DNA of 64,000 nt from Haliotis rufescens (Eukaryota), in the NCBI RefSeq assembly GCF_023055435.1, contig NW_025963815.1:558001-622000 (forward strand). The letters run 5' to 3'. Both the position numbers and the translations under genes were made by a program. Numbering within the stretch: position 1 is the first letter of the stretch; each line of letters begins with the position of its first letter. Positions 23,000 to 63,229 of this stretch are shown piece after piece. Under the pieces are notes generated by a model. The model made no database searches and had not been told where the DNA came from. It saw nothing but the letters and a program-made list of their open reading frames with translations.

Positions 23000-23102
23000 T
23001 ATAAATATAGCAGCGTCGCCCGTCCTCGAGTAGAACGTTCAGTTACTCTCAGCCCTTCAACGCCTCGGGACTTCTCCGCAACTTGCTCAACAAATAACCA
23101 TG
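23000..23102 (+). promoter_or_regulatory. Putative TATA box and ATG-only exon 1 of ELC copy 1
   Basis: TATAAATA at 23000-23007, accATG|GTATGT at 23100-23102, CACATGGC E-box at ~22960. Same layout and ~90-100 bp TATA-to-ATG spacing as copies 2-5. Implies intron 23103-29855. Confidence 0.72.
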
Positions 23103-23836
23103 GTATGTACCACCTACCGTACCTTTCCTGTGTTGAATTTTAAACACCTTTTTGCACTTTGTTCTTTAAAAGCTGTTTCAAAATTTAACTTTCATACTTT
23201 CAGTTTTAAACTCCATAATGCATTGAATAGCGTTCACGGTTTTTCTTAAGCTCTCTTTGGATTATCAAGGGCGTTAGAGGTCATTGGTTAAGTCAGCGGT
23301 ACCAGACAAACGATGACTTAGATTGGGCCTCTTTGTCCAAGCCATCACGTCTTATCTAACGAGTGGAATCTTATGCAGATTTATTGTTGCGTAGGTTTGT
23401 ATTTCTGTGTGTCAGAAAATTTTACATTAAACAATTACATGTTTGAGGAGATCGTGTAAATGGTTTTATTCCTTCATCAGCGGAATGTGTATATACGACC
23501 TTATCTTCTATTCTTTTTGGAGTTTAAACGTCTGGTTTTTTATCTCGCTCATCTTCAAGTCACGTGATCGAAAGTGTTTAACCCTAGCCGGCTGGAGGAG
23601 GGAAGATGCGCTGTTTATGCTGACAGAGCTGATAGACGCCTTCAGAGCCCCGGTATCTCTATAGGCAGTTGTTCGGGCTCGTCTCTTTTACGTTCATAAT
23701 TTATTTGCGAGATAGCTTGTCATTGTGGGTTGGGTTACAGGGGCTAGATTCCCTTCTATCAAGATATACTGCTCACAACAAGTCAAGGACCGTCCAATTG
23801 TTACACATTTCTATAGTTCATGCAATGACAAAGTCG

Positions 23837-24200
23837 ATATGAAAGAATTGGTGCCATTATAGATTAACTAAAGTAATATGAAAGAATTGGTGCCATGATA
23901 TATTAACTATAGCAATATGAAAGAATTGGTGCCATGATATATTAACTATAGCAATATGAAAGAATTGGTGCCATGATATATTAACTATAGCAATATGAAA
24001 GAATTGGTGCCATGATAGATTAACTAAAGTAATATGAAAGAATTGGTGCCATGATAGATTAACTATAGTAATATGAAATAATTGGTGCCATGATAGATTA
24101 ACTATAATAATATGAAAGAATTGGTGCCATGATAGATTAACTATAATAATATGAAAGAATTGGTGCCATGATATATTAACTATAGTAATATGAAAGAATC
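23837..24200. repeat. 39-bp minisatellite (AATATGAAAGAATTGGTGCCATGATAGATTAACTATAGT), ~9 units
   Basis: Read directly; lies in the copy 1 intron. Confidence 0.95.
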
Positions 24201-24615
24201 GGTGGTCCTGAACTTCTTTTGAGTGGTATAGATTCAGTCGACTTCCGGTGTTACGAACCTGGTTAACTCAAAACCCCTTTAAACAATCTTCGCGTAAATG
24301 CAATCGTAAGTATGTGAGTGAGTGAGTTTATCGACGCTTTGAATAGCATATCAGCTTGATGTCGGAGGAAAGCCCGAAGTGATGCAGGTCGTAAGTACGA
24401 GCTACCCCTCGACACGTATAGTATTAGCAGCGATAACATCGACAGAGGGACGTTGGTATCTGTACATCAGTATCACTTCGTCTGTATCGAACCCCCGTTA
24501 TGTCGAAACGTCCATGTTGCGCTTCCGTCAGAATCACGCACCAGACAGTGTGAATTTAGTTTCAGGACCCGTTTTACCCCGAAAGAACATCGTTAGAACA
24601 AAACATGTCTTTCAT

Positions 24616-24880
24616 GTTAGTTGTGTTTAACGCAGCTTTCAACAATATCCTTGTTATATCGCGGCGTGTCAGCTTAATGTGGGAGGAAAACCCGAAGTGA
24701 TGCAAGTCTTAGATGTTTACTTTAGTGAAACCCACGAGCAAGGGTATGGTGCTGACAAACCTAGAAACATAATCGGGGTGAGCCGGGATGCGAACCACAA
24801 TCATATGTTTCTGGCGTGCCCAAGGGACGCAACTCTGCAAAGCGAATTGCGGCGCCTTAGACGACTGGGCCGCCCGTGCC
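24616..24880 (-). mobile_element. SINE family D copy
   Basis: Aligns to 581-858; TSD AACATGTCTTTCA. Confidence 0.85.
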
Positions 24881-26004
24881 AACATGTCTTTCAAGTATTG
24901 ATACACTATCTTACACACTTACACGAAGCATGACTCGACTGCTCAACAAAAGTCGGAGAGGCAAGTTTCCTTATCGCCTTTTTAAGACAGCCAAGTAATG
25001 ATTTTTCCATCCTCAAAAATGTGCTATATTTAGCTGAACGCTGCCTGTTCGATGTATCATAAACCAAAACATACGTGTTTGTGGGCTCGGGTTAGTTGCG
25101 GACTGACGAGCTTTGCCATCGTGCGTTCTCCACTTTGTAAGATTAACCATCAAGGTCAAACTGAAAGGAATACTAGAACAACTATGTACGAATCTATACT
25201 AACATACTTGATGCTTGTGTTCAGACAAGACACACCGTAGCTCACCTCATAGAAGTGTCTAAGGCAATAATTATTAGTTTAAATCATAATTTCTAGATTA
25301 TGTAACTAATAAGACAAGACACACCGTAGCTCACCTCATAGAAGTGTCTAAGGCAATAATTATTAGTTTAAATCATAATTTCTAGATTATGTAAATAATA
25401 AGAACAAATTGTCCCAATATAAGAAACTGGAGTCCCTGCTTGGGAGGAGGATAGACTTACTACACATCCATAGACTTTCTTTCAGTAAAGCCGTGGAACA
25501 AGGCTACTTTGAAGCCGCCACATCCATGTCATTTCACCTTAATTCACCTTACATAATTCCCATTAGTTATAAACGCTTTCCCAGAACGATAACATAAAAC
25601 CAACCCGCGAGTCTGCGATTTGGTTAATTACAAAAGGTGCATTAAGTAGAGGCCTAAAAGTAAGGTGTTAGGTTGCCATGGCGCACTGTTTCTTCTAATG
25701 CGTCAGGAGCAGACAACGTTCAACAAAGAACGTATGTATTCCTACGCGTTGGCACTACTTGCCTGCCTGGCAGTTGTGACTGGTTGTAATGGAGGGACCA
25801 GTATCGAGTTACCGCGTCGCTCATTCCACTTCCAAACATGTGCTGCTGCGCCGGTAATCAGCAGCATACACAAGTCACACTAACACATTAGCTTATTACC
25901 GGCTATAGTTGGTTTCTGAAATCCATCGCTAGCTATATATCGCCTGAAAGTACTCACCTGGCGGCCATGTTGCAGCACTCGAACACCAGAAAGAGGTTAA
26001 CGGT

Positions 26005-26198
26005 AGACTTGCACAAATCTCTAGGGCATATTAATTAGAAGCTAAATCATAATTTCTAGATTATATAAATAATAAGAACAAGTTGTCCCTATAAGAGACT
26101 GGGTGTATTGTCCACATATCTAGACTTGCCTATTAGAGGATAGAATTACAACACATCCATGGACTTCTCTATCAGTACAACCTTGGAGCAAGGCTAGG
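26005..26198 (+). repeat. ~190-bp dispersed element E. Other copies at 25250-25506(+), 34264-34460(+), 36024-36100(+, partial), 42389-42561(-)
   Basis: Starts (TA)GACTTGCACAA(G/A)TC, core AAATCATAATTTCTAGATTAT, ends in hairpin CCTTG-GAG-CAAGG followed by CTAG. Confidence 0.8.
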
Positions 26199-26451
26199 TT
26201 AAGGGATACTTGTTGAATAAATAAGTGGGTGTTTCCTTTCTGGCAGGTATTTTTTTAAGTATTTAACGTCTCAGCGTAATTTGTTTTTACAGATGGTTCA
26301 GTGTGGTCTAGTTCGAATACTATATATGTTTTCTTCACTGATTGATAAACATTTAGCAGCTTATGTGAACTCTACTGTGTTTTTATTGGGAAACGTAAAA
26401 CAACGTTAACTACAACCTGAGACAGGTACTCTTCTCACTGTGTTTATTTAA

Positions 26452-26735
26452 GTGGGTGAGTGAGTGAGTTGGGTTTAACGCCGCATCAACATTATTCCAG
26501 TTATATCACGGCGTGTCAGCTTAATGTGGGAGGAAAGCCCGAAGTGATGCAGGTCTTAGACGTTTACCACTTCGGTGAAACCCACGAGCACGGGTATGGT
26601 GCTGACAAACCTAGAAACATAATCGGGGCGAACCGGGATTCGAACCCACAATCATAGGTTTCTGGCGTGCCAAGGGGACGCAACTCTGCAAAGCGAATCG
26701 CAGCGCCTTAGACGACTGAGCCACCCGTGCCCCCT
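26452..26735 (-). mobile_element. SINE family D copy
   Basis: Aligns to 581-858; near-TSD TGTTTA(T/C)TTAAG. Confidence 0.87.
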
Positions 26736-27288
26736 TGTTTACTTAAGAGGGTGATTTGGTGTGACAGCATATAGGATTTGTTTTGGTTTTGGTTTTGGTT
26801 TTGGTTTTGTTTAACGTCGCACTCAGTTGGGAGTCACGCACCACAGTTGGGAGCACATCCTGGGGGGGATCGTTTCCTGAGGGTAACGCGCATCGTTAGG
26901 GTGAGCGTGTCCCGATTAACGCTGGTCGTGATTGTTAGCATGATGTACATACAGGTAGTTTCTATCACGAGATAACGTAGTCATCGTCATCATCAACATT
27001 TTACCCTTTTCGGCGTTATTCGTGCTGTAAACATTTCATTACAACACAACATTCATACACCCACGGGGAATGAAACTAGGCATGATCGCTAGGGTGGCCG
27101 AGTGGTTAGCGCCCTTCTGTCATACCACGATCCGATAGTCGTGGGTGCGACGCCGTGAGGTAACTAAAACACTGTGTACAGCGGCGTTAAACCAAACACG
27201 CTCCACAAAGAGACCCAAAGGCGTGACATTGGTGTAATACGTGAAATTCTGCGTTTGAAGTGGGCTTAAGCAACCCATGATTGTCGTA

Positions 27289-27624
27289 GACCGCCTCCGT
27301 GGTCTAGTTGTAGAGCGTCCGCCCGGAGAGCGGAAGGTCCGGGGTTTGATTCCCGGCCGCGTCATACCAAAAGACGATAAAAGATGGTACTTGTTGTTAC
27401 CCTGTCTGGCGCTCGGCATTAAGGGGCTAAAACAAGGAGTCTCGGAGTCAGTATACTGTGTCTGAGTGGGGTATTCATGTTAAACTGCGGCATGGTATCT
27501 CAGTGAGCTAGCACTATAAATCGGCATCAGTCCGGACTACTACAAGCAGCCAAACACACACACAGATGCATGCACGTCGCTATATAATCTTGGACGCGAC
27601 GTTAAACCCAATTTCACCTCACCT
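27289..27624 (+). mobile_element. SINE family B nested inside a family A copy
   Basis: 13-bp TSD CATGATTGTCGTA at 27276-27288 and 27625-27637. Confidence 0.9.
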
Positions 27625-28878
27625 CATGATTGTCGTAAGAGACGACTAACGGGATCGGGTGGTCAGGGTCGCGTGGTTGATGCATGTCATCGTATCCTAA
27701 TTTCGAAGATCGATGTTCATGATGTCAATCTCTGGATTGTCTGGCCAGGACTCGTTTATTTACAAACCGCTGTCATGGCATCTAAACTCCCCAGCACGTT
27801 GATGTAAGCCTGCTGTGCATGTGAATGTTCAATGCGACGTGAAAGGAAGTCCATGCGCGTTTAGAATTCTCGTGGTAAACGTATCTAACATCAACCCATG
27901 TACAGGTATCGTGTTTGTCTCCTCGAGGGGGGTTCAATTTCCCCGGCACGCGAGGTATCCCCAGAACCGTAGATGGCACCTGGTTCTAATTACAGCCGCC
28001 ATCCCCGGACACAGTAACTAGCGCTCGGTGGGTACGGCTGCAGCAGCGACTAAACGCCATGACTAAGGCAAACAGCAGCACCGCCTGTCGTGCGTGGGTT
28101 CACTGGCAGAACAGACTTCACTTTCCCAGAGCTTGCTTTTTACCAACTTCGCCCTTTAGTAGCTCGTTTGATTACAAGAAAGTGCTACCATGGCAACGAA
28201 GTTGTCGGAGGTTAGAATGATACTATGGTTGAGAGTTTGGGAATGATAAAACACTTGCTCTCATATAGTCATAAGGCAGTGGTAAAATAGCTTCTGTAAG
28301 CAGTTCACTTTGCTGAGCTAAGCTGTTTTAGCATTAATCACACATATCACTGAGCATTATACGAAACAGTTTTGGGGAAACGTGATAGTTGTCTCCTATA
28401 TTTTAAATACAGATATATAGGAAGTTGCACACACAATATCGATTATTAACTTTAAACCTCAAATCACATACAATATCGAGGTTTAACTTAAAACCTCAAA
28501 TAAAATGTTTTCATAGTGATTTTGTCGGCTTTTCTTTGGATTAGAGGGTAATTAACGCCATACTTTGGCTGTTGATCAAAACCAATAGAGCAACTTGTGT
28601 TCGTAGTTGTCTGTTAAAGGGGGATATCTAGTCTGTCATACAGACCCTGACACACACATATCCAATAAATCCCATGCAAGTCTATTATAATTGGCAAGTC
28701 TAGATTACTGCAGTATCAGGAAATCTGAAAATGAAGAAAGTCTCTGGCCTCCTTCTTATCATATATTTTATTACTATAATTTAACAACTGTTTTTTTCTG
28801 TAAAAGATGTTTATTTCAGAGACTAGATGTTAGTCGAGGGAATATCGGCGCATTTGAGTCATGCCAGATAATCGAGGG

Positions 28879-29784
28879 CAGTGTTGGTAGTGTCAACAGT
28901 GTCCGCAGTGTTGGTAGTGTCAACAATGTCAGAAGTGTTGGTAGTGTCAACAGTGTCAGCAGTGTTGGTAGTGTCAACACTGTCCGCAGTGTTGGTAGTG
29001 TCAACAGTGTCAGCAGTGTTGGTAGTGTCAACAGTGTCCGCAGTGTTGGTAGTGTCAACAGTGTCCGCAGTGTTGGTAGTGTCAGCAATGTCCGCAGTGT
29101 TGGTAGTGTCAACAGTGTCCGCAGTGTTGGTAGTGTCAACAGTGTCCGCAGTGTTGGTAGTGTCAACAGTGTCCGCAGTGTTGGTAGTGTCAACAATGTC
29201 CGCAGTGTTGGTAGTGTCAACAGTGTCCGCAGTGTTGGTAGTGTCAACACTGTCCGCAGTGTTGGTAGTGTCAACAATGTCAGAAGTGTTGGTAGTGTCA
29301 ACAATGTCAGAAGTGTTGGTAGTGTCAACAGTGTCCGCAGTGTTGGTAGTGTCAACAGTGTCCGCAGTGTTGGTAGTGTCAACAATGTCCGCAGAGTTGG
29401 TAGTGTCAACAGTGTCAGCAGTGTTGGTAGTGTCCGCAGTGTTGGTAGTGTCAACAGTGTCAGAAGTGTTGGTATTGTCAACAGTGTCAGAAGTGTTGGT
29501 GGTGTCAACAGTGTCCGCAGTGTTGGTAGTGTCAACAGTGTCCGCAGTGTTGGTAGTGTCAACAGTGTCCGCAGTGTTGGTAGTGTCAACAATGTCCGCA
29601 GTGTTGGTAGTGTCCGCAGTGTTGGTAGTGTCAACAGTGTCCGCAGTGTTGGTAGTGTCAGCAATGTCCGCAGTGTTGGAGGGTCAACAGTGTCCGCAGT
29701 GTTGGTAGTGTCAGCAATGTCCGCAGTGTTGGTAGTGTCAACAATGTCCGCAGTGTTGGTAGTGTCAACAATGTCCGCAGTGTT
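28879..29784. repeat. 27-bp minisatellite (CAGTGTTGGTAGTGTCAACAGTGTCCG)n built from 9-bp subunits
   Basis: Read directly; ends ~70 bp before the copy 1 splice acceptor. Confidence 0.96.
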
Positions 29785-29855
29785 TTGGTATTTCTTTGAA
29801 ATTGTAACGACTTTCTTTTTCTTTTGGAGATCTAATATCATATCATTATTTTCAG

Positions 29856-30329
29856 CCCGAACTATCACGAGACGAAATTGAGGAGGTCACCGAGGTGTTC
29901 GACCTTTTCGATTTCTGGGATGGTCGTGATGGCGCCGTCGACGCTGCCAAGACCGGCGACATGTTGTACTGTCTGGGCCTCAACCCTACAATGAGCACCA
30001 TCATGAAGAACGGCGGTGTTCAAAAGTTCGGAGAGAAGAACTACAAACTGGAGGAGTTCCTGCCCATCTACCAGACCGTCATGCAGATCAAGGACACAGG
30101 CACCTACGCCGACTTCATGGAGGCTTTCAAGACATTCGACAGGGAGGGCCAGGGCTTCATCTCATCTGCTGAGCTGAGGCACGTTCTGACATCTCTGGGA
30201 GACAGATTGTCAGACAACGACGTTGATGAAATCATCAGGTGCACAGACTTGAGAGAGGATCTGGAGGGCAACGTCAAGTACGAGGACTTCATCTCCAGAG
30301 TCATGGCCGGACCCTACCCAGACAAATAA
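29856..30329 (+). CDS. Myosin essential light chain, copy 1 (divergent isoform), main coding exon; predicted join(23100..23102,29856..30329), 158 aa
   Basis: Acceptor ttattttcAG at 29855, then [30 protein letters not shown]...[13 protein letters not shown]...[11 protein letters not shown]...MAGPYPDK*. Matches molluscan (scallop-type) ELC, including the Ca2+-binding DFWDGRDG loop. Confidence 0.96.
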   Translation, partial: PELSRDEIEEVTEVFDLFDFWDGRDGAVDAAKTGDMLYCLGLNPTMSTIMKNGGVQKFGEKNYKLEEFLPIYQTVMQIKDTGTYADFMEAFKTFDREGQGFISSAELRHVLTSLGDRLSDNDVDEIIRCTDLREDLEGNVKYEDFISRVMAGPYPDK

Positions 30330-31152
30330 ACGCACACATAAAAATAAATCTCCAAACAACGTCTCACAATTTTCATGACTTCCACGTTGGTCTGTTGTAC
30401 AAGGTCAACCAAAGACGTTTCCTTCATCTAAACATTATCAAAAGCTCTGACCCAAGAGCAAAGATTAACCTCCACTCTGTGGCCCGCTTCTGTGCAATGT
30501 CCCTGAGAAGGTCATGTCTTGGACTGAAATTGTGAAACCAATGGCATTTCGTGACACAGGCAATGCTCTTCTGTTCAACCAAACAGCAACGCCGTCTTTC
30601 GGCCCTCAGGTTGTGAGACTCGCGCCTCTTGATGTGATCTATGTGTAACTTGATACAGCTCAGTGTATATACCTCCTAATTTATTTACATGGGAAAATGT
30701 ACATATCTAACATGGCGAAGGTTAGGCGTTTTAAACTGTGCAATGAAATTCCCCGATTAAATATTTAGTCACGAACCATTTTTGTTGTGTTGAGCTCCTC
30801 TCTGGAGAATGTGTGGTCCGCTCATTAAGGCTGTGTGATGCATAATAAAGTCGGTTATCACGAACTCATTACGTATTCGTTATATCCGTAATACAGGAAC
30901 TGTTCTTGCTTTGATGGAAGACCTACTGACAGTAACGCATTCAGACTCAAAGGACGAATACGTTTATCGTGAGTGAGTGAGTGAGTGAGTTAGTATGGTT
31001 TAGCAATATTTCAGCAACATCACGCATTGTACCCATGTGGGGATTCGAACCCGGGACATCGGCGTGACAACATAACGATTAGGCGACTGTTGAACACACA
31101 TCTTTATAGAGATCATCATCGTTAATTAGGTAAAGATTGAATACGATACGAT

Positions 31153-33499
31153 TGTCGATACCTCATATCCACGGGTTTCACCAAAGTGATGAACCTTTGT
31201 ATGTCGATACCATATATCCACGGGTTTCACCAAAGTGATGAACCTTTGTATGTCGATACCATATATCCACGGGTTTCACCAAAGTGGTGAACCTTGGTAT
31301 GTCGATACCATATATCCACGGGTTTCACCAAAGTGATGAACCTTGGTATGTCAATACCATATATCCACGGGTTTCACCAAAGTGGTGAACCTTGGTATGT
31401 CGATACCATATATCCACGGGTTTCACCAAAGTGATGAACCTTGGTATGTCGATACCATATATCCACGGGTTTCACCAAAGTGATGAACCTTGGTATGTCG
31501 ATACCATATATCCACGGGTTTCACCAAAGTGATGAACCTTGGTATGTCGATACCATATATCCACGGGTTTCACCAAAGTGATGAACCTTGGTATGTCGAT
31601 ACCATATATCCACGGGTTTCACCAAAGTGGTGAACCTTGGTATGTCGATACCATATATCCGCGGGTTTAACCAAAGTGATGAACCTTGGTATGTCGATAC
31701 CATATATCCACGGGTTTCACCAAAGTGATGAACCTTTGTATGTCGATACCATATATCCACGGGTTTCACCAAAGTGGTGAACCTTGGTATGTCGATACCA
31801 TATATCCACGGGTTTCACCAAAGTGGTGAACCTTGGTATGTCGATACCATATATCCACGGGTTTCACCAAAGTGATGAACCTTGGTATGTCGATACCATA
31901 TATCCACGGGTTTCACCAAAGTGGTGAACCTTGGTATGTCGATACCATATATCCGCGGGTTTAACCAAAGTGATGAACCTTGGTATGTCGATACCATATA
32001 TCCACGGGTTTCACCAAAGTGATGAACCTTGGTATGTCGATACCATATATCCACGGGTTTCACCAAAGTGGTGAACCTTGGTATGTCGATACCATATATC
32101 CGCGGGTTTAACCAAAGTGATGAACCTTGGTATGTCGATACCATATATCCACGGGTTTCACCAAAGTGATGAACCTTGGTATGTCGATACCTCATATCCA
32201 CAGGTTTCACCAAAGTGATGAACCTTGGTATGTCAATACCTCATATCCACGGGTTTCACCAAAGTGATGAACCTTGGTATGTCAATACCTCATATCCACG
32301 GGTTTCACCAAAGTGATGAACCTCTGTATGTCGATACCATATATCCGCGGGTTTCACCAAAGTGATGAACCTTGGTATGTCGATACCATATATCCACGGG
32401 TTTCACCAAAGTGGTGAACCTTGGTATGTCGATACCATATATCCACGGGTTTCACCAAAGTGGTGAACCTTGGTATGTCGATACCATATATCCACGGGTT
32501 TCACCAAAGTGGTGAACCTTGGTATGTCGATACCATATATCCACGGGTTTCACCAAAGTGGTGAACCTTGGTATGTCGATACCATATATCCGCGGGTTTC
32601 ACCAAAGTGATGAACCTTGGTATGTCGATACCATATATCCGCGGGTTTCACCAAAGTGATGAACCTTGGTATGTCGATACCATATATCCGCGGGTTTCAC
32701 CAAAGTGATGAACCTTGGTATGTCGATACCAGATATCCGCGGGTTTAACCAAAGTGATGAACCTTGGTATGTCGATACCAGATATCCGCGGGTTTAACCA
32801 AAGTGATGAACCTTGGTATGTCGATACCAGATATCCGCGGGTTTAACCAAAGTGATGAACCTTGGTATGTCGATACCAGATATCCGCGGGTTTCACCAAA
32901 GTGATGAACCTTGGTATGTCGATACCAGATATCCGCGGGTTTCACCAAAGTGATGAACCTTGGTATGTCGATACCATATATCCGCGGGTTTCACCAAAGT
33001 GGGGAACCTTGGTATGTCGATACCATATATCCGCGGGTTTCACCAAAGTGGGGAACCTTGGTATGTCGATACCATATATCCGCGGGTTTCACCAAAGTGG
33101 TGAACCTTGGTATGTCGATACCATATATCCGCGGGTTTCACCAAAGTGGGGAACCTTGGTATGTCGATACCATATATCCGCGGGTTTCACCAAAGTGATG
33201 AACCTTGGTATGTCGATACCATATATCCACGGGTTTCACCAAAGTGATGAACCTTGGTATGTCGATACCATATATCCACGGGTTTCACCAAAGTGATGAA
33301 CCTTGGTATGTCGATACCATATATCCGCGGGTTTAACCAAAGTGATGAACCTTGGTATGTCGATACCATATATCCGCGGGTTTCACCAAAGTGATGAACC
33401 TTGGTATGTCGATACCATATATCCGCGGGTTTCACCAATGTGATGAACCTTGGTATGTCGATACCAGATATCCGCGGGTTTAACCAAAGTGGTGAACCT
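31153..33499. repeat. 49-bp satellite (GTCGATACCATATATCCACGGGTTTCACCAAAGTGATGAACCTTGGTAT)n, ~48 units, SINE-derived
   Basis: Read directly; the unit resembles the interior of SINE family D. Confidence 0.96.
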
Positions 33500-35111: not shown

Positions 35112-35232
35112 TCAGATCCAAACAACCGAAACATGTGAAATATACTCCAACACGCTGGACCACAGAGTCAACTGAACAACGAACCACGTACACCTAAGAC
35201 ACCTAAACCATTTGATACCTTCTCTGACGAAA

Positions 35233-35858
35233 GACACACCTCACACACACCCGCCACATAACCTTCACTGCGCATGCACGACACACATCACGTACGACTC
35301 TCACGATGACACCTACACACATGCCGTCCCATACTTCACTTTACTTCACTTCTTTGACAGCAGGAGACACACCTCCCACACCCCCGCCACATAACCTTCA
35401 CTACACTACACACATCATGTACGACTCTCACGATGACACCTACACACATGCCGTCCCATACTTCACTTTACTTCACTTCTTTGACAGCAGGAGACACACC
35501 TCCCACACCCCCGCCACATAACCTTCACCACACTACACACATCATGTACGACTCTCACGATGACACCTACACACATGCCGTCCCATACTTCACTTCTTTG
35601 ACAGCAGGAGACACACCTCCCACACCCCCGCCACATAACCTTCACTACACTACACACATCATGTACGACTCTCACGATGACACCTACATACATGCCGTCC
35701 CATACTTCACTTCTTTGACAGCAGGAGACACACCTCCCACACCCCCGCCACATAACCTTCACTACACTACACACATCATGTACGACTCTCACGATGACAC
35801 CTACACACATGCCGTCCCATACTTCACTTTACTTCACTTCTTTGACAGCAGGAGACAC
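35233..35858. repeat. 117/127-bp tandem repeat, ~5 units
   Basis: Unit GACACACCTCCCACACCCCCGCCACATAACCTTCAC...TTTGACAGCAGGA. Confidence 0.93.
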
Positions 35859-36264: not shown

Positions 36265-36295
<31 letters not shown>

Positions 36296-38794
36296 CCATA
36301 CACGTTTGTATAACATATGTGTGTTTCATTACTAACTTGCCACAGGGGCCTGGGTCTAAACAGGCCCATCTGGCCCTACGGGGTCCCTCGGTGCGGTGAT
36401 TTATGAATTGACTTGATTAAATGTTGCGTTTATGGAGGCATAAAAATATAACCAGGTGTGCGAACTGTAAAATCCTGGAAACGCGTGCAGCCGGATGTTG
36501 CGTTTATAAACTTTATGAACTTTATAAACATCTTGAAGTAAATTCTTATATAACTACGTCAATAACTATAGCTTCACAGACTGTTTATTTAATCATTAAC
36601 GCACACACAAAATGGAAAACAAAACGAAATCAGTGATTTCGTTCAGCACAATAATGCAAGACAAGTCCTGCCCATTTTATTATCAGCCAATCAGGGAACA
36701 GTCGCCCGTTTGGGGGCGCGGCCTAATGTTTATGTTTTTTTATGTTGATGCAATAAAAAATGCTTGGTTAGCCAATCAAATGCCGATTCATATTTTTAGC
36801 TCATATTGTAAGAAAAAGGTTCCTCTGTGTCATTATGTGCAATAGATCAACTCAATTTGTAGCCTGTTACTTCAGGACATTATGGTACGGGGGTGTAATA
36901 TCTTCATTTATCATTTAACTTAAGCATTTATCCATGACATAAGCTTATGACATAAAAACATGTATGTCATACCCCAATGACATAAGTATGCAAATTAGAT
37001 ATGCAAATTAGATAACCGGAAGAGCGAGCGGTTTGATTTGAAACTATATATTATAAGTGAAGTTACACCAGAGATATAATCAGATTACACAGAATCGTTG
37101 TTGTAACCGTTATTAAAGTTTCAATTATTCTGCAAAAGTCTGTTCAAGTATTTTGTTTAAAATAATCCGAGGAACTTTTTTTCTCAGCGAATTGTTTACT
37201 TTGGTTTCGCCAAAGGCTCGGCAAATACCGATTAACTAAGACTCGGTTGATATTTCCCATATTAAAAAACACTCGTGATGAAGAGAGTCAAACCTCAAGC
37301 CATATCATCAACAGAGCAAGAGTGAACCATACAAACTGCGGTAATCAGTTACAGCGAGTTATATTCACACAAGAAAAGATTTGTTTGTTGTTTAACGCCG
37401 CACTCAGCAATATTCCAGCTATATGACGGCGGTCTGTAAATAATCCAGTCTGGACCACACATTCCAGTGATTGACATTATGGGCATCGATTCACGCAATT
37501 GTGATACGATGACATGCATCAACCGAGTCAGCGAGCCTGACAACCCGATCCTGTTAGCCGCCTCTAAACGAAAAGAATAGTCGCCTTTTACGGCAAGCAT
37601 GGGTTGCTGAAGACCTATTCTCCCCCGAATCTTCACAGGTCTTTAATATACCACCCGATCCCGTTAGTTGTCTTTTCCGACAAGCATGGGTTGCTGAAGA
37701 CCAATTCTAACCCGGATATTCATGAGGGCATAATGATGGTATTTATGAATAGGTTTATATGTCGTACTCTCAAAATACATAATATTTATACATATTAAAT
37801 ATGAGAATAAAATATCGCTTCAACAGACCTCTAATAGATCGATGTGTGCCGACACGAATGTTGACACAGTGCCCTTGACATACAAATAACAGAGAAAGTC
37901 GATCAATGTTACCGTTAATTCTGAGACAGTATATTATTGTATTTTCATCTGATTGTTTTTCCTTGTTTATAGTGTCATTAATGTTTATTCGCATATGATA
38001 AAAGACAAATTAGATCTCTTATCGGCAAAATCTACAGGTCGCGAGTTTCAGATTTGTGATGCATGTATACAGTGTAAGAAATACCGTGATAGTTATCGTC
38101 TCGCCAGGTAAGGGCACCCAAAACTAACTATATTCTTATAATTTTCATATATTTACTCAATCCATCATTTAAACATGTATCATAGCGAATGTTTAACCGA
38201 TAAAAACATCCGCAATAGCATTTTTTTAATATGACGGCAAGGGAACAGCGGAGATGAAACGGGTTCACAAATGGTCTAAATAAAATCCAGTGTCGACTCC
38301 CTCTAAGGAAGGTCACTCATGCATATCAATAGGATACTTACCTCATCATCCATCATCTCCCCAGAGTATATGCTTCCATATACCACATCGCTTGACCGTG
38401 ACATCTCCCACGCACGTGCATCCCGTGTAGGTCGATTCGGTTACCTTGGTGACCAGTTCCCTGTAAGGAAGTCCTATTGACTGCATGTAAAACCTTCATC
38501 ACATATTGACACATAAAACGCCAGAAATTAATTAATGTCACAAATATCTGGAGAAATTAGTGGAGACAATTATATGAATGGATCACTGAAAATAAGTTAT
38601 GACGCCAGGTGTTAGCGAAAAGGGTAATATGTCCTGCTTTACATGTAGAACCCACCACTCACACAATTTGAGGGTAAAGTAGGTGTTTGTTGTCTAACTC
38701 CGCACAGCAATACTCCTGCCATAGATTGCGGTCTGTAAACAATCGAGGCTTACTTATATGTCCAAGCTGACATTGTTTCAGAGGATAGTGCAAG

Positions 38795-39069
38795 TTTGTT
38801 TGTTTTTTTAATTTTGTTATTTAACACCGCACTCGGCTATATTCCAGCTATATGACGGCGGTCTGTAAATAATCGAGTCTGGACCAGACAATCCAGTGAT
38901 TGACATCATGAGCATCGATCCACGCAATTGGGAATCATTGACATGCATCAACCAAGTCCGCGAGCCTGACCACCCGATCCCGTTAGTCGCCTCTTACGAC
39001 AAGCATAGTCGCTTTTTACGGCAAGCATGGGTTGCTGAAGACCTATTCTAACCCGGATCTTCACGGGTT
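38795..39069 (-). mobile_element. SINE-like family A (~260 bp, non-tRNA head), representative copy. Others at ~20-243(-), 2229-2505(-), 14380-14505(+), 16437-16702(-), 21023-21237(-), 27237-27775(+, split), 34531-34771(-), 37380-37720(-), 40580-40940(-), 43811-44056(+), 54699-54880(+), 59146-59372(+)
   Basis: Shared 5' end ACCCGTGAAGATCCGGG, shared body, and tail GCTGGAATATTGCTGAGTGCGGCGTTAAAC(AAAC)n. Confidence 0.88.
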
Positions 39070-40017
39070 CTCAATATTACTGCAGCATCTGGACAGCTGT
39101 ATGATCCATCTCTTGTTATTACTACACATGGTCTTTTGCCACACGTTAACCTCACAGTGACGTAGATGATACCATTGCTTAGTTTGCAAAACCAATAGAG
39201 TCTTCGGATTAACCTCACAAGACATGTTTGAGTGATGGTCATACAAAAACTTAGTCAAAACACATGATTCTTTCCACAATAATTAATAGTAAATAGAATC
39301 GGAAAAACAATTCTATAATCATAAGGAATATTAGATTGCACGATTCCGAGCATGTGTTTATGAATAACTATCAAATAGGGATGATACCTTGTGTTCGCGA
39401 AAAGGCGAATGTATGCTATCACAAACACATACAAATCACAAACACATACAAATCAAAGTCCATTTTAAACCTGAAAAGGTACAGGTCGTTGGGCTTAGAT
39501 CGTTTTGTGGCACCAGGCCCAGATTTCCCATATTAATAATTTAATATGTATCTATTATTTACTTATTTCTCCCATAAAATGGAAAATCCATCTTTACATT
39601 TAACAGCAAGAATTATTTTTTTATTACTCGCTAACTATAAAAAAACCACAATACATCATATGTTAATAATTTTTATTTTCATTGACATTCTGACTTTCCA
39701 GTGTATCAGCGGCTACATACTAACATGGCCAGCTTTAAGTTGAGGAAGGTGGTATAGTTTCTATACAGTTATCTACACTTTGATAAAGATAATTTCATGT
39801 GTATGATATTATAGTACCATAGTTTGAAAATAGGATTTAAATTGGATTTTAAATAATTACTTTTCTTCCGGTATTATGTATGTTTGGTCAACATTGCTTG
39901 GAAGAGGAACTGAAATATGTCATTGATTTGAGCGCCTGTTCGCATTGGCGTCCGGTTTCTGGTCCAGTTGTAAGTGTCTTTCATTTTAAGTGTTTATCAG
40001 CATTGGGAGAACATTGT

Positions 40018-40491
40018 CTATTTATCTGGGTAGGGTCCGGCCATGACCTTGGAGATGAAGTCCTCGTACTTGACGTTGCCCTCCAGATCCTCTCTCAAGT
40101 CTGTGCACTTGATGATGTCGTCCATCTGGGTGTCGGTCAGTCTGTCTCCCAGAGATGTCAGAACGTGCCTCAGCTCAGCAGATGAGATGAAGCCTTGGCC
40201 CTCCCTGTCGAATGTCTTGAAAGCCTCCATGAAGTCGGCGTAGGTGCCTGTGTCCTTGATCTGCATGACGGTCTGGTAGATGGGCAGGAACTCCTCCAGT
40301 TTGTAGTTCTTCTCTCCAAACTTCTCCACACCTCCGTTCTTCATGATGGTGGTCATGGTAGGGTTGAGGCCCAGACAGTACAACATGTCGCCGGTCTTGG
40401 CAGCGTCGACGGCGCCATCACGACCATCCCAGAAATCGAAAAGGTCGAACACCTCGGTGACCTCCTCAATTTCATCCTTTGATAGCTGAGG
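40018..40491 (-). CDS. Myosin essential light chain, copy 2, main coding exon; complement(join(40018..40491,42737..42739))
   Basis: Acceptor tttgtgtttcAG, then [11 protein letters not shown]...GPYPDK*; intact 474-bp exon. Confidence 0.96.
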
Positions 40492-56253: not shown

Positions 56254-57134
56254 GGGTTACAGGCCGGCAAAGCCACATTTCGAAAATAGATAGCCCAAAT
56301 TGATGTGGCTCTCGCGGCAATGGTTATGGTTGCGTGATTGTATAATGTGACTCTCGCGGCTATGCTGTCAAAACATGCTTTGTGATTCTAACAGGTTACC
56401 GTATATAACAAAACAAGTCTTGTTTTCTCATTTTTTATTCAACAAGGATAACAGTAACATATTCATCAAAACTTTACATTGATGAATATGAATAGCATAT
56501 GAATAGCATAATGGATTTTAGGTCATTACTGCAGAAGAAAGGTGGCCGCCCACGTGGTCAGCATATTCCATCTCACTCAGGTGTTGGTTCAGGAGCTGGA
56601 TCTTGAGGGACGCAATACGTGCATCGATTGCCTTGTACTTCTTTCTTCGTGAAGGTTCTGACCACTGGTGAGAGAGTCTCAGGACTGTAACCACTTTGAG
56701 TGACTGCTCTCGCTGAAATAGCTTCACTACCTCGTAGATGGTCGGGTGGCACTTCTTGGCAAGCTCCCTTAGTTCGTCCCCCACCCACTCTTGGCATTCT
56801 TTCCAAATTTCAAAATTACTATATAAGCAACCCCTAAAGCCCCCCTCCTGGGTTGCACAAACTCACTTTCCCCTTTTTGGAAACACATTAAATGGCCTGG
56901 CCGGGCCCGTGTGCGACATACGCTTGCAGTCGGAAAGCGCACGTTAAATCTCCAATATAAGTAAGTAAGTAAGTAACACCACGCTTAGTAATTTAAATGT
57001 GGGACACTCATTTAAAGGTATCGGTAATCGGATTAAGAAATTACCCGCTAGATTAGGTGAAATGCACTCAGCTGAAAATGTGGCTCTACCGGCAATAGCC
57101 ATTTCTGAAATGTGGCTCTCCCGGCTAGACACCC
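56254..57134 (-). mobile_element. Non-autonomous DNA transposon with MULE-like transposase C-terminal remnant
   Basis: ORF 56518-56784 (HPTIYEVVKLFQREQ...RRKKYKAIDARI). Imperfect terminal inverted repeats (GCCGGxxAGCCACATTTC) flanked by a CTAATT direct repeat. Confidence 0.55.
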
Positions 57135-58199
57135 CTAATTGCCAGCAACTAAGTCAACGATCCAACCCAATCAGCCACCGACGTTAAAAAAATGAAATTC
57201 CGACAACTGGTAGTGTAGATCACGTACATTGTGTACCCCTCTGACAAGTGTAGCTTGTGACGAGCTTATGACGTAATATAATAACGCGCACATTCCAGGA
57301 AACATGCAGTGTTCATGTACCGTTTGTGAGAAATCCTTTTCGATGAATGTAAGAATGACATAAAATGTAGGTAATCATTCGTGTTTGTTGGGATGGCGGA
57401 TATCCTGTAACAGGAATAAGCACTATGGTGCCCGCCAACATTCGCGAAATACAAGTACATAATAAATGATCTCTTCTATTTATGCTACAAGAAACCACTC
57501 CAGCAAATGTTTGTGCATCTAGTAGAGTGATTAACACGAGAAGCTGAGATTAGCCCAAGAAGCAGACACCGTGCCACATCGGGCGTGGGCGGGAGGTAGG
57601 AATGATGTAGGTACACACGAAGAGAGAACCTAATGAGCCCCAGCCCTGACACAGACCTCGAACAGGAAACTATTTATATACGTTTTGAGTGAGTGATTAT
57701 TGCTTAACGTCACATCAGCAAGTAATATTCGTAGACCAATGCGCATCATAGCTTGAAGATCTCCATTGCGAGCTGTAAGACAAAGTTTGACCTCGATGGG
57801 TACAATAGGACTTGGTTACTTTTGTTCACTCACTCACTCACTCACTCAGCACAACTGACAAAATTCAATTCATGCTGTGGTATAAACAGATAGCAAATGT
57901 TTTAATGCTAATCGTCTTTATTCTACACTGGTTCCACAACTACATACTACATACTACAGCTACATACTACAGTGGTATATATTTACATGGATGGGAAACT
58001 ATCTGCCCATTGCAGGCATCTTCTATGTACAACAGAAAACCTGTGCATCTACAGTGGAAGTGGACAAGAGTCTGTTTGTTTGTCCAGCCATGTCATTGTA
58101 GATCAGTGCTAAATATGTCAATGCTTTTGTAGAAGTCACACATATGTCTCTTTCTTCGCACGTCATTGCGAGGTCTTTAATATCTAGAGGACAGAGTGT

Positions 58200-58673
58200 C
58201 TATTTGTCTGGGTAGGGTCCGGCCATGACCTTGGAGATGAAGTCCTCGTACTTGACGTTGCCCTCCAGATCCTCTCTCAAGTCGGTGCACTTGATGATGT
58301 CGTCCATCTGGGTGTCGGTCAGTCTGTCTCCCAGAGATGTCAGAACGTGCCTCAGCTCAGCAGATGAGATGAAGCCCTGGCCCTCCCTGTCGAATGTCTT
58401 GAAAGCCTCCATGAAGTCGGCGTAGGTGCCTGTGTCCTTGATCTGCATGACGGTCTGGTAGATGGGCAGGAACTCCTCCAGTTTGTAGTTCTTCTCTCCA
58501 AACTTCTCCACACCGCCGTTCTTCATGATGGTGGTCATGGTAGGGTTGAGGCCCAGACAGTACAACATGTCGCCGGTCTTGGCAGCGTCGACGGCGCCAT
58601 CACGACCATCCCAGAAATCGAAAAGATCGAACACCTCGGTGACCTCCTCGATTTCATCCTTTGATAGTTGAGG
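58200..58673 (-). CDS. Myosin essential light chain, copy 4, main coding exon; complement(join(58200..58673,59464..59466))
   Basis: Protein identical to copies 2, 3 and 5; AATAAA on the minus strand at 57917-57922. Confidence 0.96.
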
Positions 58674-58754
58674 CTGAAACACAAAACACAGATATCAGCA
58701 ACAAAGCATTGAACATCCACTGAAGAACATGTCCCGTTTATGAAGTTCAAGGGG

Positions 58755-58996
58755 GTGAGTGAGTGAGTTATATTCCAGTTATATCATGGCGTGTCAGCCG
58801 AATGACGGAGAAAGTGATGCAGGTCTCAGACGTTTATCACTTTGGTGAAACCCACGAGCACGGGTATGGTGCTGACAAACCTTGAAACGTAATTGGAGCG
58901 AAACGGGAATCGAACCCACAAACATAGATTTCTGGAATGCCTAAGGGACGCAACTCTGCACAGCGAATTACAACGCCTTAGACGACTGGGGCACCT
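58755..58996 (-). mobile_element. SINE family D copy in the copy 4 intron
   Basis: Aligns to 581-858. Confidence 0.82.
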
Positions 58997-59463
58997 TTTG
59001 ACTCAAGTCTGCAGTGTGTGATGAATAACTTTGGCTGCAGTAAGTTAACAAAATTTATAGCAGTAACTGATCAACAATATAAACGATGATAACAGCAATG
59101 TTCAGTATATGAAGATGATTAGGTAATTTTAAACAGAAGTAGAGAGACCCGTGAAGGTCCGGCAGAGAATTGGTCTTCAGATACCCATGCTTGTAAGAGG
59201 CGATTAACAGGATTGGGTGATCAGGCTCGCTGACTTGGTTGATGCATGTCATCGTATCCCAACTGCGTAGATAGATGCTCTTGATGTCAATCACTGGATT
59301 GCCTGTCCAGCAGATTATTTACAGACCGCCGTCTTAGAGCTGGAATATTGCTGAGTGTGGCATTAAACAAACAGACGATAGTGATGGTGTGTGCTGATTG
59401 TAGACGTCTATAGAAACAACACTCCACAGACTCTGATCCAGCCTGGATCTGTTGTAAACTCAC

Positions 59464-59620
59464 CATGTTTCTAGCAGGGTCTGCTTGAGTCTGACAACCG
59501 AAAAACTGAGGGCAGGTGCTTGTTGAGTGATGACTGTTAACCGTTGTCCGAGCTTCTTATACCCAGCGGACACACACCCCCACCACCCCTCCCCCTATTC
59601 CCTCGCTGACGAGCCATGTG
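59464..59620 (-). promoter_or_regulatory. ATG-only exon 1, TATA box and E-box of ELC copy 4
   Basis: aacATG|GTGAGT (59464-59466), GGGTATAAGAA (TATA 59554-59561), CACATGGCTC (core 59615-59620). Intron 58674-59463. Confidence 0.85.
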
Positions 59621-60279
59621 TCCGGCGCGTGGTCCCGACCCCCGTTCATCCCCCCGCACCCCTGGGGTGACCCAGCAGGCGTATAGAGGCACATGCTGGT
59701 ATCGGAGGCTCATTACGATTAGATTATATAAGAACTGAGGACAGTGGAGCTTCTAATGGATGGACGATGTACACTAGATGCCCTTACGTTATGCTGATGA
59801 GAAAAGGATGATGTTAGTTATGTAATCGTTGTTCACAAACATGCGTAGTATTAGTTTGTAATAGCCTATAACCATTTACCAGTTTACTATTCTCGGGAAC
59901 TTTCTAAATGTGTAAACATACACATCTCTATCTGTTGATCATAAATAACTGACAAAGACATCGAAGCTTCACAATGTATTTTTTAACTGTTTGATAATAC
60001 GACATGCTATAAACCATAAGTTGTTAGCCATATGCATTTTTTTATTCCTGAATGAATATCATGATATACAATGACTACGTAATTGTGTTTTAAGAACCCC
60101 GGTCGTAACAGAGTTAGTGTCGGGGTGTAATTTATTGATCACTTGATCCACAGGTTATATCAATTATTAACGGGAAGAAAACGCTACGTTTTACCTTACT
60201 TGATAACATAAACTTGAAAATCAAAACACCAGCAATAATAAGAGTGTGAAATGGTTTCATTGATGGCTTTATTCAGAGA

Positions 60280-60780
60280 GACAAAACACTCTCCACAAGA
60301 CTGTATAAAAAGAGGGATGACTTCAACTTAATATTCAATTTCTCTTATGTCGAGCAATATTCCTGCAGCTCCATCCTTTGATTTCAAAACTAAATTTCAC
60401 AACTTTTGAGGGACAATCGAGCATGTTTTTACTAAGAAGGTTTCAAAGAGCGTCATACTAATTTTGCTCAGAAGTTGCTTGATCAAGGTTACAACATTCA
60501 AGGCCTCAGTAAAGCTTTCAAAAAGTATTATGGTGAAGATGATGAGCACAATTCCAAATTTGATGCATCAGTGACCAAAATGATGTCCGATACAATTCGT
60601 TATTTTGACTTGAACCATATGTTCCCGTGTGATGTTTTTTTCATGTGAACAATTGACTTGCCTTTGCATGTGTTTGTGACGGATGCCACCAGGATACGCC
60701 CACTTTCTCGCCAATATCAAGTATCATCAGAAAATTAATTATTCATAAACACATGCTCATCATATCGTCGGACGCACTAT
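60280..60780 (+). mobile_element. Second copy of the same RT fragment, between divergent ELC copies 4 and 5
   Basis: CTCTCCACAAGACTGTAT...CAATATTCCTGCAGCTCC...GCATCAGTGACCAAAATGATGTCCGAT is shared with 44620-44920. Confidence 0.65.
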
Positions 60781-61638
60781 GGAATCCTTAAGATTAAAGA
60801 TTCCTGAAGATTATGGAAATGTTTTGACGCTTATTATGATTAATCACAAAACCAAACAAACTTCAGTTGCTGTAGTTGTAGATGCGGTCTTCTGCAAGAT
60901 GACCTCACTGTTATTTTAAAAAATAATGTACACAATTCAAGATCTATCTCCGTGTAGCTGTCAACAAACATCCGACAAACAAATGATAAATTTGTTGTGA
61001 CTAAATACTTGATTATTATCCCCAGTTCCTGGATCCTGGGAAGGTCGTATAAAGAAAAGAAGAGAAAATTATATGCGTTTAGTGATGATGTAATATTTCT
61101 GAAGATATGAAAAAAGATATTTCAATCGAACTGAAATAATAACGGGGAATAACACTTTATTCTGGAATGTCATTATGATTTTCGACGAAGATTAGTAAAA
61201 AGATACACAATAAATCTAGCATATGACATTTATTGTCAAGTGACATGATTATTTCGTCTTGTGACTTGAAAAGAGGACAGTTTCAATCATGAAGATATCA
61301 GTATTATGTGGGTTTTTGGATAATATTAATCTGCTTTTATTTATTTACAAGTATTAATATGCAACGCCATGCGGCAGAAAACGAGCAAAATGCCCTAGAA
61401 AAGCCCCAGTACATCATCGTCACAAATTATCGCATAATTAACATGTGTCATCGAAGTTTAAGAATTGTAAACATTTTTCAACAAATTCTTTGTCAAAGTT
61501 AACTCGATATCGGATATAATGTACACATAAGCATGGAGGAGATGGGGAAATAGTTTATCATGATGCAATGGGCGTGGCTTGGAAGCTACCCAAGTGTATC
61601 TTGTCAGTACCCCCGCGGTGCGGTGAGGTCACTGGGGT

Positions 61639-61729
61639 TACAAATACGACCGGACAGCATCCTGACTTCACAACCCTCCCTGCAGCCGCTGAATCACTTG
61701 GTCTGTCCAGCTCCTCAAGTCGCATCATG
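61639..61729 (+). promoter_or_regulatory. ATG-only exon 1 and non-canonical TATA of ELC copy 5
   Basis: atcATG|GTAAGA (61727-61729), TACAAATA 88 bp upstream, TGATGCAAT at 61561-61569. Intron 61730-62344. Confidence 0.7.
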
Positions 61730-61954
61730 GTAAGAATAACTGACGCCACCTTTATTTTACTTCTGGTCTACATGCAGAGTTGCGTCCCTTATCCTGCCAG
61801 GATATTCTGGTCGTGTGTTCGAATCATAGGTCATCCCCGACAATACTCGACAAGCCATCGTCTTGCTGTTGTGTCTACGAACTGACATGCCACTCACTAA
61901 CTCACTCACTGATTTATCATATTTGCTCTCATACGCCGATAATAGGTTCGACGC

Positions 61955-61958
<4 letters not shown>

Positions 61959-62040
<82 letters not shown>
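61959..62040. repeat. (CA)n microsatellite in the copy 5 intron
   Basis: Read directly. Confidence 0.98.
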
Positions 62041-62042
<2 letters not shown>

Positions 62043-62344
62043 ATCCTGGCACCTATTGAGGATGTAGATTGTCGGAATATTGTTGATGAAAGCGTACACT
62101 CACTACCTCATTCGCTATTAGATTTCACTTTCCAATGCTAATTGGAAAAACAAGAATTCAGAAAGCATATTTAAGAAATTGAAATTTTAATGTATTTTTT
62201 TCCTTGAATGGTTTAAGAAAAATGACGTTGTTTGAACTGGGATACGTAACGTAACCTGCCAGAGTTGTGCACAGTTTAGACTGAATATATAATCATTCTT
62301 TGTTCCTATATTTGTATTCTGATAACGTGTCATTTGTGTTTCAG

Positions 62345-62818
62345 CCTCAACTATCAAAAGACGAAATCGAGGAGGTCACCGAGGTGTTCGATCTTTTCGA
62401 TTTCTGGGATGGTCGTGATGGCGCCGTCGACGCTGCCAAGACCGGCGACATGTTGTACTGTCTGGGCCTCAACCCTACCATGACCACCATCATGAAGAAC
62501 GGAGGTGTGGAGAAGTTCGGAGAGAAGAACTACAAACTGGAGGAGTTCCTGCCCATCTACCAGACCGTCATGCAGATCAAGGACACAGGCACCTACGCCG
62601 ACTTCATGGAGGCTTTCAAGACATTCGACAGGGAAGGCCAGGGCTTCATCTCATCTGCTGAGCTGAGGCACGTTCTGACATCTCTGGGAGACAGACTGAC
62701 CGACACCCAGATGGACGACATCATCAAGTGCACCGACTTGAGAGAGGATCTGGAGGGCAACGTCAAGTACGAGGACTTCATCTCCAAGGTCATGGCCGGA
62801 CCCTACCCAGACAAATAG
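62345..62818 (+). CDS. Myosin essential light chain, copy 5, main coding exon; join(61727..61729,62345..62818)
   Basis: Protein identical to copies 2-4; 3'UTR alignable with copy 4; AATAAA at 63127-63132. Confidence 0.96.
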
Positions 62819-63229
62819 ACACTCTGTCCTCTAGATATTAAAGACCTCGCAATGACGTGCGAAGAAAGAGACATTTGTGTAACTGTTACAAAAGCATTGA
62901 CATATTTAACACTGATCTACAGTGACATGGCTGAACAAACAAATAGACTCTTGTTCACTTCCACTGTAGATGCACAGGTTGTCTGTTGTACATAGAAGAT
63001 GTAAAGGCTGTAAAGGGTACTTAGTTTCTCTTTCCCCGTGTACATATACACCACTGTAGTATTTATGTCGATACATTTAGTCGTAATGTACTATGTAGTA
63101 TTTTGTAGTCACTAGAACCAGCGTACAATAAAAATGATTAGCATGAAAATGTTTACTGTCTTTATAATAACAAAATCTAAGAAGTCTGCTGATATGAACA
63201 CGTACATGCGTGGATCAGGTTAACCAATT

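Follow-up and report, generated by a model that had tools for sequence, protein, structure and literature searches.

Five myosin essential light chain genes with a shared second exon and diverged flanking sequences in the abalone Haliotis rufescens

The stretch of DNA analysed here, a window of 64,000 nucleotides from the abalone Haliotis rufescens (C37:558001-622000 in an assembly of 1.33 Gb in 615 contigs), carries five two-exon genes for the myosin essential light chain (ELC), arranged in the order +,-,-,-,+. The genes follow a common plan in which exon 1 ends in the ATG, one intron follows and exon 2 holds the remaining 157 codons (Table 1). Local tblastn with the 157-residue exon-2 product, to which an M was prefixed, placed it at 29856-30326 (+), 40491-40021 (-), 52836-52366 (-), 58673-58203 (-) and 62345-62815 (+), here called copies 1 to 5. 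A pyrimidine tract and an AG stand directly 5' of exon 2 in each copy, and splice sites are intact in all five. The initial annotation of this DNA had called five intact genes in this order, with introns of 2245, 846, 790 and 615 bp in copies 2 to 5. Both calls are borne out: the five exon-2 frames and the ATG/GT donors were found, and the donors lie exactly at the distances implied. The introns, including that of copy 1 (6753 bp), have only transposon pieces in common. Five non-ELC open reading frames (ORFs) of the window, the largest one outside the tandem-repeat arrays included, gave no Pfam match. ORFs of 396 aa (28691-29881) and 350 aa at 28.7-29.9 kb were rejected as genes, being a translated minisatellite.

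Table 1. Coordinates of the gene parts and repeats in the window
Feature	Position	Strand	Remarks
Copy 1 core promoter and exon 1	23000-23102	+	TATAAATA at 23000-23007; ATG 23100-23102, then gtatgt
Copy 1 intron, 6753 bp	23103-29855	+	27-bp minisatellite at 28878-29784
Copy 1 exon 2, coding (157 codons and TAA)	29856-30329	+	divergent isoform, differences clustered
Copy 2 core promoter and exon 1	42737-42832	-	GTATATAAAG at 42823-42832; ATG/GT donor, ATG 42739-42737
Copy 2 intron, 2245 bp	40492-42736	-	SINE-like repeat at 40580-40861
Copy 2 exon 2, coding	40018-40491	-	private 3'UTR; AATAAA at 39672-39677 and 39620-39625
Copy 3 possible extra upstream exon	54639-54663	-	in-frame ATG, donor CAGG/gtaagc; H. 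cracherodii model only
Copy 3 core promoter and exon 1	53683-53779	-	GTATAAGTAG at 53770-53779; ATG/GT donor, ATG 53685-53683
Copy 3 intron, 846 bp	52837-53682	-	
Copy 3 exon 2	52142-52836	-	coding 52363-52836; ~220 nt of 3'UTR common to copies 4 and 5
Copy 4 predicted core promoter and exon 1	59464-59562	-	GTATAAGAAG at 59553-59562; ATG/GT donor, ATG 59466-59464
Copy 4 intron, 790 bp	58674-59463	-	mostly SINE-like repeats
Copy 4 exon 2	57876-58673	-	coding 58200-58673; ~320 nt 3'UTR; AATAAA at 57917-57922
Copy 5 5' region, two candidate first exons	61563-61729	+	ATG/GT donor, ATG 61727-61729 (gtaaga); or ORF 61563-61622 (donor GCG/gtgagg)
Copy 5 intron	61730-62344	+	615 bp; 722 bp with the donor at 61622
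Copy 5 exon 2	62345-63166	+	coding 62345-62818; ~330 nt 3'UTR; AATAAA at 63127-63132
Satellite-rich stretches	2787-13031, 31153-33499, 35232-35858, 45173-46249, 48531-52162		
SINE-like repeats	58812-58893, 59146-59370, 38794-39077, 40580-40861, 43811-44057, 54698-54879		the first two in the copy 4 intron

All database searches were run with the exon-2 translation, and none with the joined exon 1-exon 2 model. Full-length matches among ELCs of solved structure are the scallop ELC (1b7t_Z, E = 1e-68, query residues 1-157 against chain residues 1-156) and squid LC-1 (3i5f_C, E = 3.6e-68). Pfam domains PF13499, PF13405 and PF00036 score above their cut-offs in copy 2, and PF13499, PF13405 and PF13833 in copy 1. 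On these matches the predicted product of the array is a molluscan myosin II essential light chain. The Ca2+-loop motif of domain I is identical in the alignment to that of the scallop ELC, where this loop binds the trigger Ca2+ (PMC4914028, section 10), and the Ca2+ trigger that the initial annotation assigned to EF-hand I is thus supported at the level of the motif. The C-terminus MAGPYPDK is likewise identical to that of the scallop (Argopecten) striated adductor ELC of 1B7T chain Z. Still, about 30% of residues differ between the two proteins, and the abalone protein, known from its sequence, is the product of two-exon genes that form a multi-copy array.

The exon-2 protein of copies 2 to 5 is 100% identical, with 3-6 nucleotide differences in 435 nt, and the exon-2 protein of copy 1 is 93% identical to it. 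Among copies 2 to 5 the nonsynonymous divergence of exon 2 (dN) is 0 and the synonymous divergence (dS) is 0.054-0.088. Set against this identity of 98-99% in exon 2, the same duplicates show 59-68% in exon 1 and the core promoter, and their introns are unalignable. Similarity among the copies ends 6-32 nt into the intron. On the 3' side it ends no more than 3 nt past the stop codon in copies 1 and 2; in copies 3, 4 and 5 it runs on through 210-315 nt of 3' untranslated region (3'UTR) at 90-92% identity. Three 3'UTR types are therefore seen (copy 1; copy 2; copies 3, 4 and 5), where the initial annotation had counted at least two.

The 5' parts of the genes present a graded picture. Exon 1 and the core promoter are 63-68% identical among copies 2 to 5, with copies 2 to 4 significantly alike at about 65-68% (z 5.7-7.6), and those of copy 1 show no significant likeness to the other copies. 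GTATA(T)AAG boxes lie 85-95 nt upstream of the ATG in copies 2, 3 and 4, and copy 5 has no TATA box at its predicted promoter, only TACAAATA at that position. Upstream of the core the promoters are unalignable and of unequal TATA quality. The description of the promoters and 5'UTRs as diverged therefore holds between copies, although homology can still be recognised between copies 2, 3 and 4 in exon 1 and the core promoter.

The differences that do exist within exon 2 are distributed as a mosaic, as assessed by permutation tests (P = 3.5e-5, P = 8e-5 and P < 5e-6). Copy 1 carries 14 differences in 32 nt (core positions 346-377) adjoining a run of 177 identical nt (P = 3.5e-5); synonymous differences reach about 40% locally in this island, and the synonymous differences of copy 1 stand a few nt from its amino-acid differences (P = 8e-5). 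Fixed changes between copies 2 to 5 and the long-form genes of a second contig (see below) occur only at core positions 3-33 and 453, the edges of the homology. The absence of nonsynonymous change and the mosaic differences together agree with the statement that the array keeps the protein fixed, and they indicate old duplicates whose exon 2 has been homogenised by gene conversion and purifying selection. We accordingly favour, at a probability of roughly three in four, the reading that the array belongs to an abalone-specific muscle ELC family, made up of tandem duplicates in which conversion under purifying selection homogenises exon 2 while the flanks drift.

Comparison with other abalones bears on the age of these events. 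The 158-aa product of copy 1 (P0121) is encoded letter for letter on a 55.7 Mb contig that carries H. asinina models. Each of the species H. asinina, H. rubra, H. cracherodii and H. rufescens has both a long and a short form, and the split between these isoforms is therefore older than the four species. A single residue, an M-to-L change, is common to the long and short forms in H. asinina only. Sequences upstream of individual copies are recognisable in H. cracherodii models, so the copy-specific 5' regions are old and have been retained; judged from these models, the duplication predates the split of H. rufescens and H. cracherodii.

The favoured reading can be cast as a series of steps. The founder of the array would first have shed its internal introns, probably when a partial reverse transcript recombined with it, and duplications in tandem and inverted orientation would have followed while H. 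rufescens and H. cracherodii were still one lineage. Repeated gene conversion, together with strong purifying selection, would afterwards have homogenised exon 2, and in copies 3 to 5 the 3'UTR as well. Divergence may have gone too far for recombination in the promoters, first exons and introns, and these would have evolved independently. Islands of difference would persist only where the isoforms must differ, namely in the copy 1 helix (core codons 116-126) and at the ends of the long form.

A conserved paralogue lies elsewhere in the assembly. The gene for P0137, a conserved Haliotis ELC of 160 residues at C605:30.27-30.28 Mb, is single-copy there and encodes a protein that is 82% identical to the array protein and ends in DKDK. 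An acceptor precedes its micro-exon SSLSRDEID, and the ATG of P0137 therefore sits on a separate upstream exon. Introns follow the ATG and codon 10 and lie at codon 60, at 116/117 and at 144/145; the first is the intron that the array genes also have, and the array genes keep this one only, without the four coding introns. Recombination with a partial reverse transcript would be expected to remove all introns except the first, as in the model of cDNA-mediated intron loss (PMC2614967). A classical processed retrogene was considered and rejected, because the ancestral intron after the ATG is kept in all copies and the loss is only partial. Two further loci were noted in passing. A second multi-exon ELC-like gene (C605:30,333,000-30,338,100, locus L043), with 44-51% identity to P0137, is found at a distance of about 60 kb from the P0137 gene and has exon boundaries in common with it, at residues 11 and 60 at least. 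Within about 0.6 Mb at C223:37.83-38.44 Mb there are more than 20 matches to the C-terminal half of ELC at 34-50% identity, a pattern suggestive of an extensive tandem array of other EF-hand (calmodulin-like) genes.

The array family extends beyond the window. The contig C37 is 624,530 bp long and ends 2.5 kb past the window, which places the cluster at the extreme end of an unplaced contig. Altogether the assembly holds at least nine ELC copies of the array family, on the three pieces C37, C12 and C556. The suspicion that the cluster continues is correct in so far as three copies lie on C12 and one beside a gap in C556, but C37 holds no sixth ELC copy elsewhere. The C12 cluster (354,600-382,100; loci L031, L036, L032 and L037) comprises three more two-exon genes, with exon 2 at 365113 (+), 370623 (-) and 380194 (-) and ATGs at 362554 (+), 373322 (-) and 382078 (-). 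They encode a long form of 173 residues, and their promoters and first exons are near-identical. Exon 2 of these genes begins earlier, with ASKTAK(S/P)TKPTKAAAPQIK ahead of LSKDEIEE, and the C-terminus reads GPPT or GPPA; the N-terminal extension is rich in Lys, Pro, Ala and Thr (ASKTAKPTKPTKAAAPQIK). C12 as an alternative haplotype of C37 was rejected, since matches between the two are limited to the exon and to repeats resembling short interspersed nuclear elements (SINE-like repeats).

The ninth copy (locus L009, about C556:57,583,561-57,584,040) is 97% identical and contains five 1-bp indels, each of them in a homopolymer. Such a copy may be a pseudogene, or its sequence may be poorly polished. 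Its acceptor is TTTTAG. Upstream, at a distance of about 1.06 kb, comes a 100-N gap (57,582,398-57,582,497), and the DNA between exon 2 and the gap yielded no first exon. In H. cracherodii the orthologues of copies 3, 4 and 5, of the C556 copy and of the long genes are on one scaffold of 20.5 Mb, and the three H. rufescens pieces therefore probably form one locus, the gap in C556 being the likely docking site for C37 and C12. The genes already exist as RefSeq models in four Haliotis species, and a cluster at 90% identity comprises 28 distinct sequences; a literature search found no paper on an abalone ELC gene array.

How far copies 2 to 5 encode the same 158-aa protein, as the initial annotation had it, depends on their first exons. 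Orthology was traced by mapping the unusual N-termini of H. cracherodii RefSeq models onto the window DNA. The N-terminus of P0001 maps to exon 1 of copy 3 (53727-53683) with an identical donor after the ATG, and its residues 1-9 map to 54663-54639 at 100% identity. This mapping backs the copy 3 donor after the ATG and suggests an additional 5' exon. P0002, the copy 4 orthologue, maps to 59713-59563, upstream of copy 4, where the frame is broken in H. rufescens, and that extension of copy 4 is therefore probably not coding. P0129 maps to 61563-61622, upstream of copy 5, and is in frame in H. rufescens too, where a good donor follows; with this first exon copy 5 may yield a product of 177 residues with a 20-residue extension instead of one of 158. 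The RefSeq models of the orthologues conflict over the first exons of copies 4 and 5. The same 158-aa product is hence secure for exon 2 and for copy 2 and likely in copies 3 and 4, and it is possible for copy 5, which may instead make the longer protein.

Evidence for transcription came from contigs of two runs, X1 and X2, which were compared with 57800-63300, a region that holds copies 4 and 5; loose contig ends revealed copies 1 and 2. Unique intron and intergenic DNA has zero depth in both runs, as fits RNA. An X1 contig on copy 5 exon 2 has a tail that is an exact and unique match to 23077-23102, followed by the start of copy 1 exon 2; this tail is copy 1 mRNA, spliced as predicted. The tail of an X2 contig on copy 4 matches 42766-42738 with one mismatch and is joined to exon 2; it is copy 2 mRNA, again spliced as predicted. 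X1 and X2 contigs also cover the 3'UTR of copy 4 over 57876-58173 with 3-4 differences and that of copy 5 over 62845-63122 with one difference. Copies 1, 4 and 5 thus co-occur in X1, and copies 2, 4 and 5 in X2. Transcription therefore extends to at least four of the five copies, and the array is not one in which a single copy is active. Over 57800-63300 the alternative first exon of copy 5 (61563-61622) has no cover by an RNA-like contig.

Several points weigh against the favoured reading. X1 and X2 are runs of contigs that were guessed to be RNA. Over 57800-63300, RNA-like contigs leave the first exons predicted for copies 4 and 5 uncovered. Concerted evolution is inferred from one genome and one amino-acid site, and in a gene expressed at very high levels strong selection on codons could have reduced dS somewhat. 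The timing and mechanism of the intron loss, too, are matters that we infer.

What the extra copies are for admits two readings. The first, regulatory subfunctionalisation, is compatible with homogenisation of exon 2 by conversion and holds that each copy makes the identical protein under a promoter of its own, adapted to a particular muscle (shell/columellar, foot, radula, heart, larval retractors), to a particular stage, or to both. The unalignable promoters upstream of the core, the differing TATA quality, the three 3'UTR types and the copy-specific 5' regions retained between H. rufescens and H. cracherodii are what such a division would leave behind, and the three vertebrate calmodulin genes, which encode one protein, are a precedent (PMC5419757, PMC13127890). 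Promoter divergence is, however, equally predicted by neutral drift, transcripts or UTRs of three copies occur together in single libraries (X1: 1, 4 and 5; X2: 2, 4 and 5), and a scan for MEF2, CArG, E-box and GATA motifs in the 800 nt upstream revealed no informative or differential pattern. The proposal of the initial annotation that the array diversifies cis-regulation stands as sequence divergence with conserved copy-specific 5' regions; as a statement about function it is weakened by the co-occurring transcripts, which fit dosage or redundancy equally.

According to the second reading, extra copies only raise the output of an abundant muscle protein and the promoter divergence is neutral. 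Identical proteins, several copies in the same libraries, a similar core promoter plan in all copies (TATA about 90-100 nt before the ATG) and near-identical promoters in the three C12 long-form genes agree with such dosage amplification, but copies with weak signals, namely copy 5 without a TATA box and copy 3 without a normal poly(A) signal, would add little. The only poly(A) signal of copy 3 is an ATTAAA 19 nt past the stop codon, after which its 3'UTR enters a 3.6-kb satellite. Specialisation and dosage both fit the data and are not mutually exclusive; each is a possibility that falls short of even odds, and to the same degree.

A broader picture that would unite these features is more speculative, and we consider it somewhat improbable as a whole: a lineage-specific locus of at least nine genes and three forms (short copy-1, short copy-2 and long), in which conversion would hold the core with the Ca2+ trigger constant and selection would keep the islands of difference together with private promoters for each muscle or stage. 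If true, the nine-gene, three-form locus would be a separate-gene counterpart of alternative splicing in the vertebrate ELC.

It is unlikely that copies 3, 4 or 5 are silent or decaying and keep intact frames only through conversion from active copies. Several observations could be read in this way: RNA-like contigs are absent from exon 1 as predicted for copies 4 and 5, the distal 3'UTR of copy 3 has given way to satellite DNA, the predicted promoter of copy 5 lacks a TATA box, and the C556 copy bears five 1-bp indels. Against decay, the RNA-like runs X1 and X2 both contain 3'UTR sequence specific to copy 4 and to copy 5, none of the five copies has lost a splice site, and the C556 indels all fall in homopolymers about 1 kb from a gap, where they may be consensus errors. 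Still less credible is an origin without gene conversion, in which the copies are old and their second exons are alike only through extreme purifying selection that includes synonymous sites. The protein is indeed highly constrained, copy 1 being identical between distant abalone species, and the gene is very highly expressed; but such selection does not account for about 40% local synonymous differences in the copy 1 island beside 177 nt with none, nor for the likeness of the copies over 12-32 nt of the intron and, in copies 3 to 5, along the 3'UTR. That the assembly falsely multiplied one or two real genes or left haplotypes uncollapsed, as the short unplaced contigs C37 and C12 in satellite-rich DNA might suggest, can practically be discarded, because flanks, introns and first exons differ in every copy, separate orthologues are annotated on the one 20.5 Mb H. 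cracherodii scaffold, and transcripts of distinct copies exist.

With tandem duplicates and a converted exon 2 as the favoured reading, the array is a tidy but ordinary case of a known pattern: a tandem family, concerted evolution confined to an exon, and partial intron loss. The four regulatory contexts of the initial annotation are its striking part and, beyond the sequence divergence, may exist; the remainder follows familiar rules. Its interest is partly biological, as the molluscan ELC holds the Ca2+ trigger of myosin-linked regulation, and a near-identical multi-gene set with three protein forms concerns abalone muscle biology and has relevance for aquaculture. The array also offers a small, clean example of conversion confined to a coding exon with selected islands of divergence, suited to teaching and to the measurement of conversion tracts. 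For RNA-seq and annotation it carries a practical consequence: reads from exon 2 cannot be assigned to a copy, and only the first exons and 3'UTRs discriminate. The discriminating stretches are 23030-23102, 42737-42800, 53683-53750, 59464-59550 and 61563-61729 for the first exons of copies 1 to 5, and 30330-30850, 39620-40017, 52142-52362, 57876-58199 and 62819-63166 for their 3'UTRs.

Two vertebrate systems are instructive by comparison. Like the array genes, vertebrate calmodulin genes have an intron directly after the ATG; they contain many introns and are dispersed on different chromosomes, and ongoing gene conversion is not known among them. Unlike them, the abalone genes are clustered, nearly intron-free and marked by conversion mosaics. 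The resemblance lies in the organisation of several genes with an identical exon-2 protein and different non-coding parts, just as CALM1, CALM2 and CALM3 encode one identical Ca2+-binding EF-hand protein and differ in their non-coding parts (PMC5419757, PMC13127890). Alternative splicing of one gene gives rise to the long and short forms of the vertebrate skeletal ELC, and the functional effects of the N-terminal extension have been reviewed (PMC4914028). Abalones, too, have a form with an N-terminal extension, but here the short (C37) and long (C12) forms are separate genes. The abalone extension has only about 16-19 residues and recalls that of the vertebrate long ELC.

The window is also rich in repeats. 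Its satellites have units of 22 bp (3.2 kb), a C-rich 73 bp (4.9 kb, with GC skew to -0.9), 33 bp (1.7 kb), 49 bp (2.3 kb) and 25/32 bp (3.6 kb), the last of which, at 48531-52162, adjoins the 3'UTR of copy 3. This satellite richness is probably the reason why C37 is short and unplaced. The SINE-like copies draw hundreds of contigs with very high summed depth in all four RNA-like runs, and such elements are therefore abundant in transcripts of several abalone species. Finally, a 150-nt element in the copy 2 intron (41374-41519) occurs twice, inverted, in the copy 3 intron (52904-53053 and 53376-53526) at 78-82% identity, and is probably a small transposable element rather than a sign of common intron ancestry.

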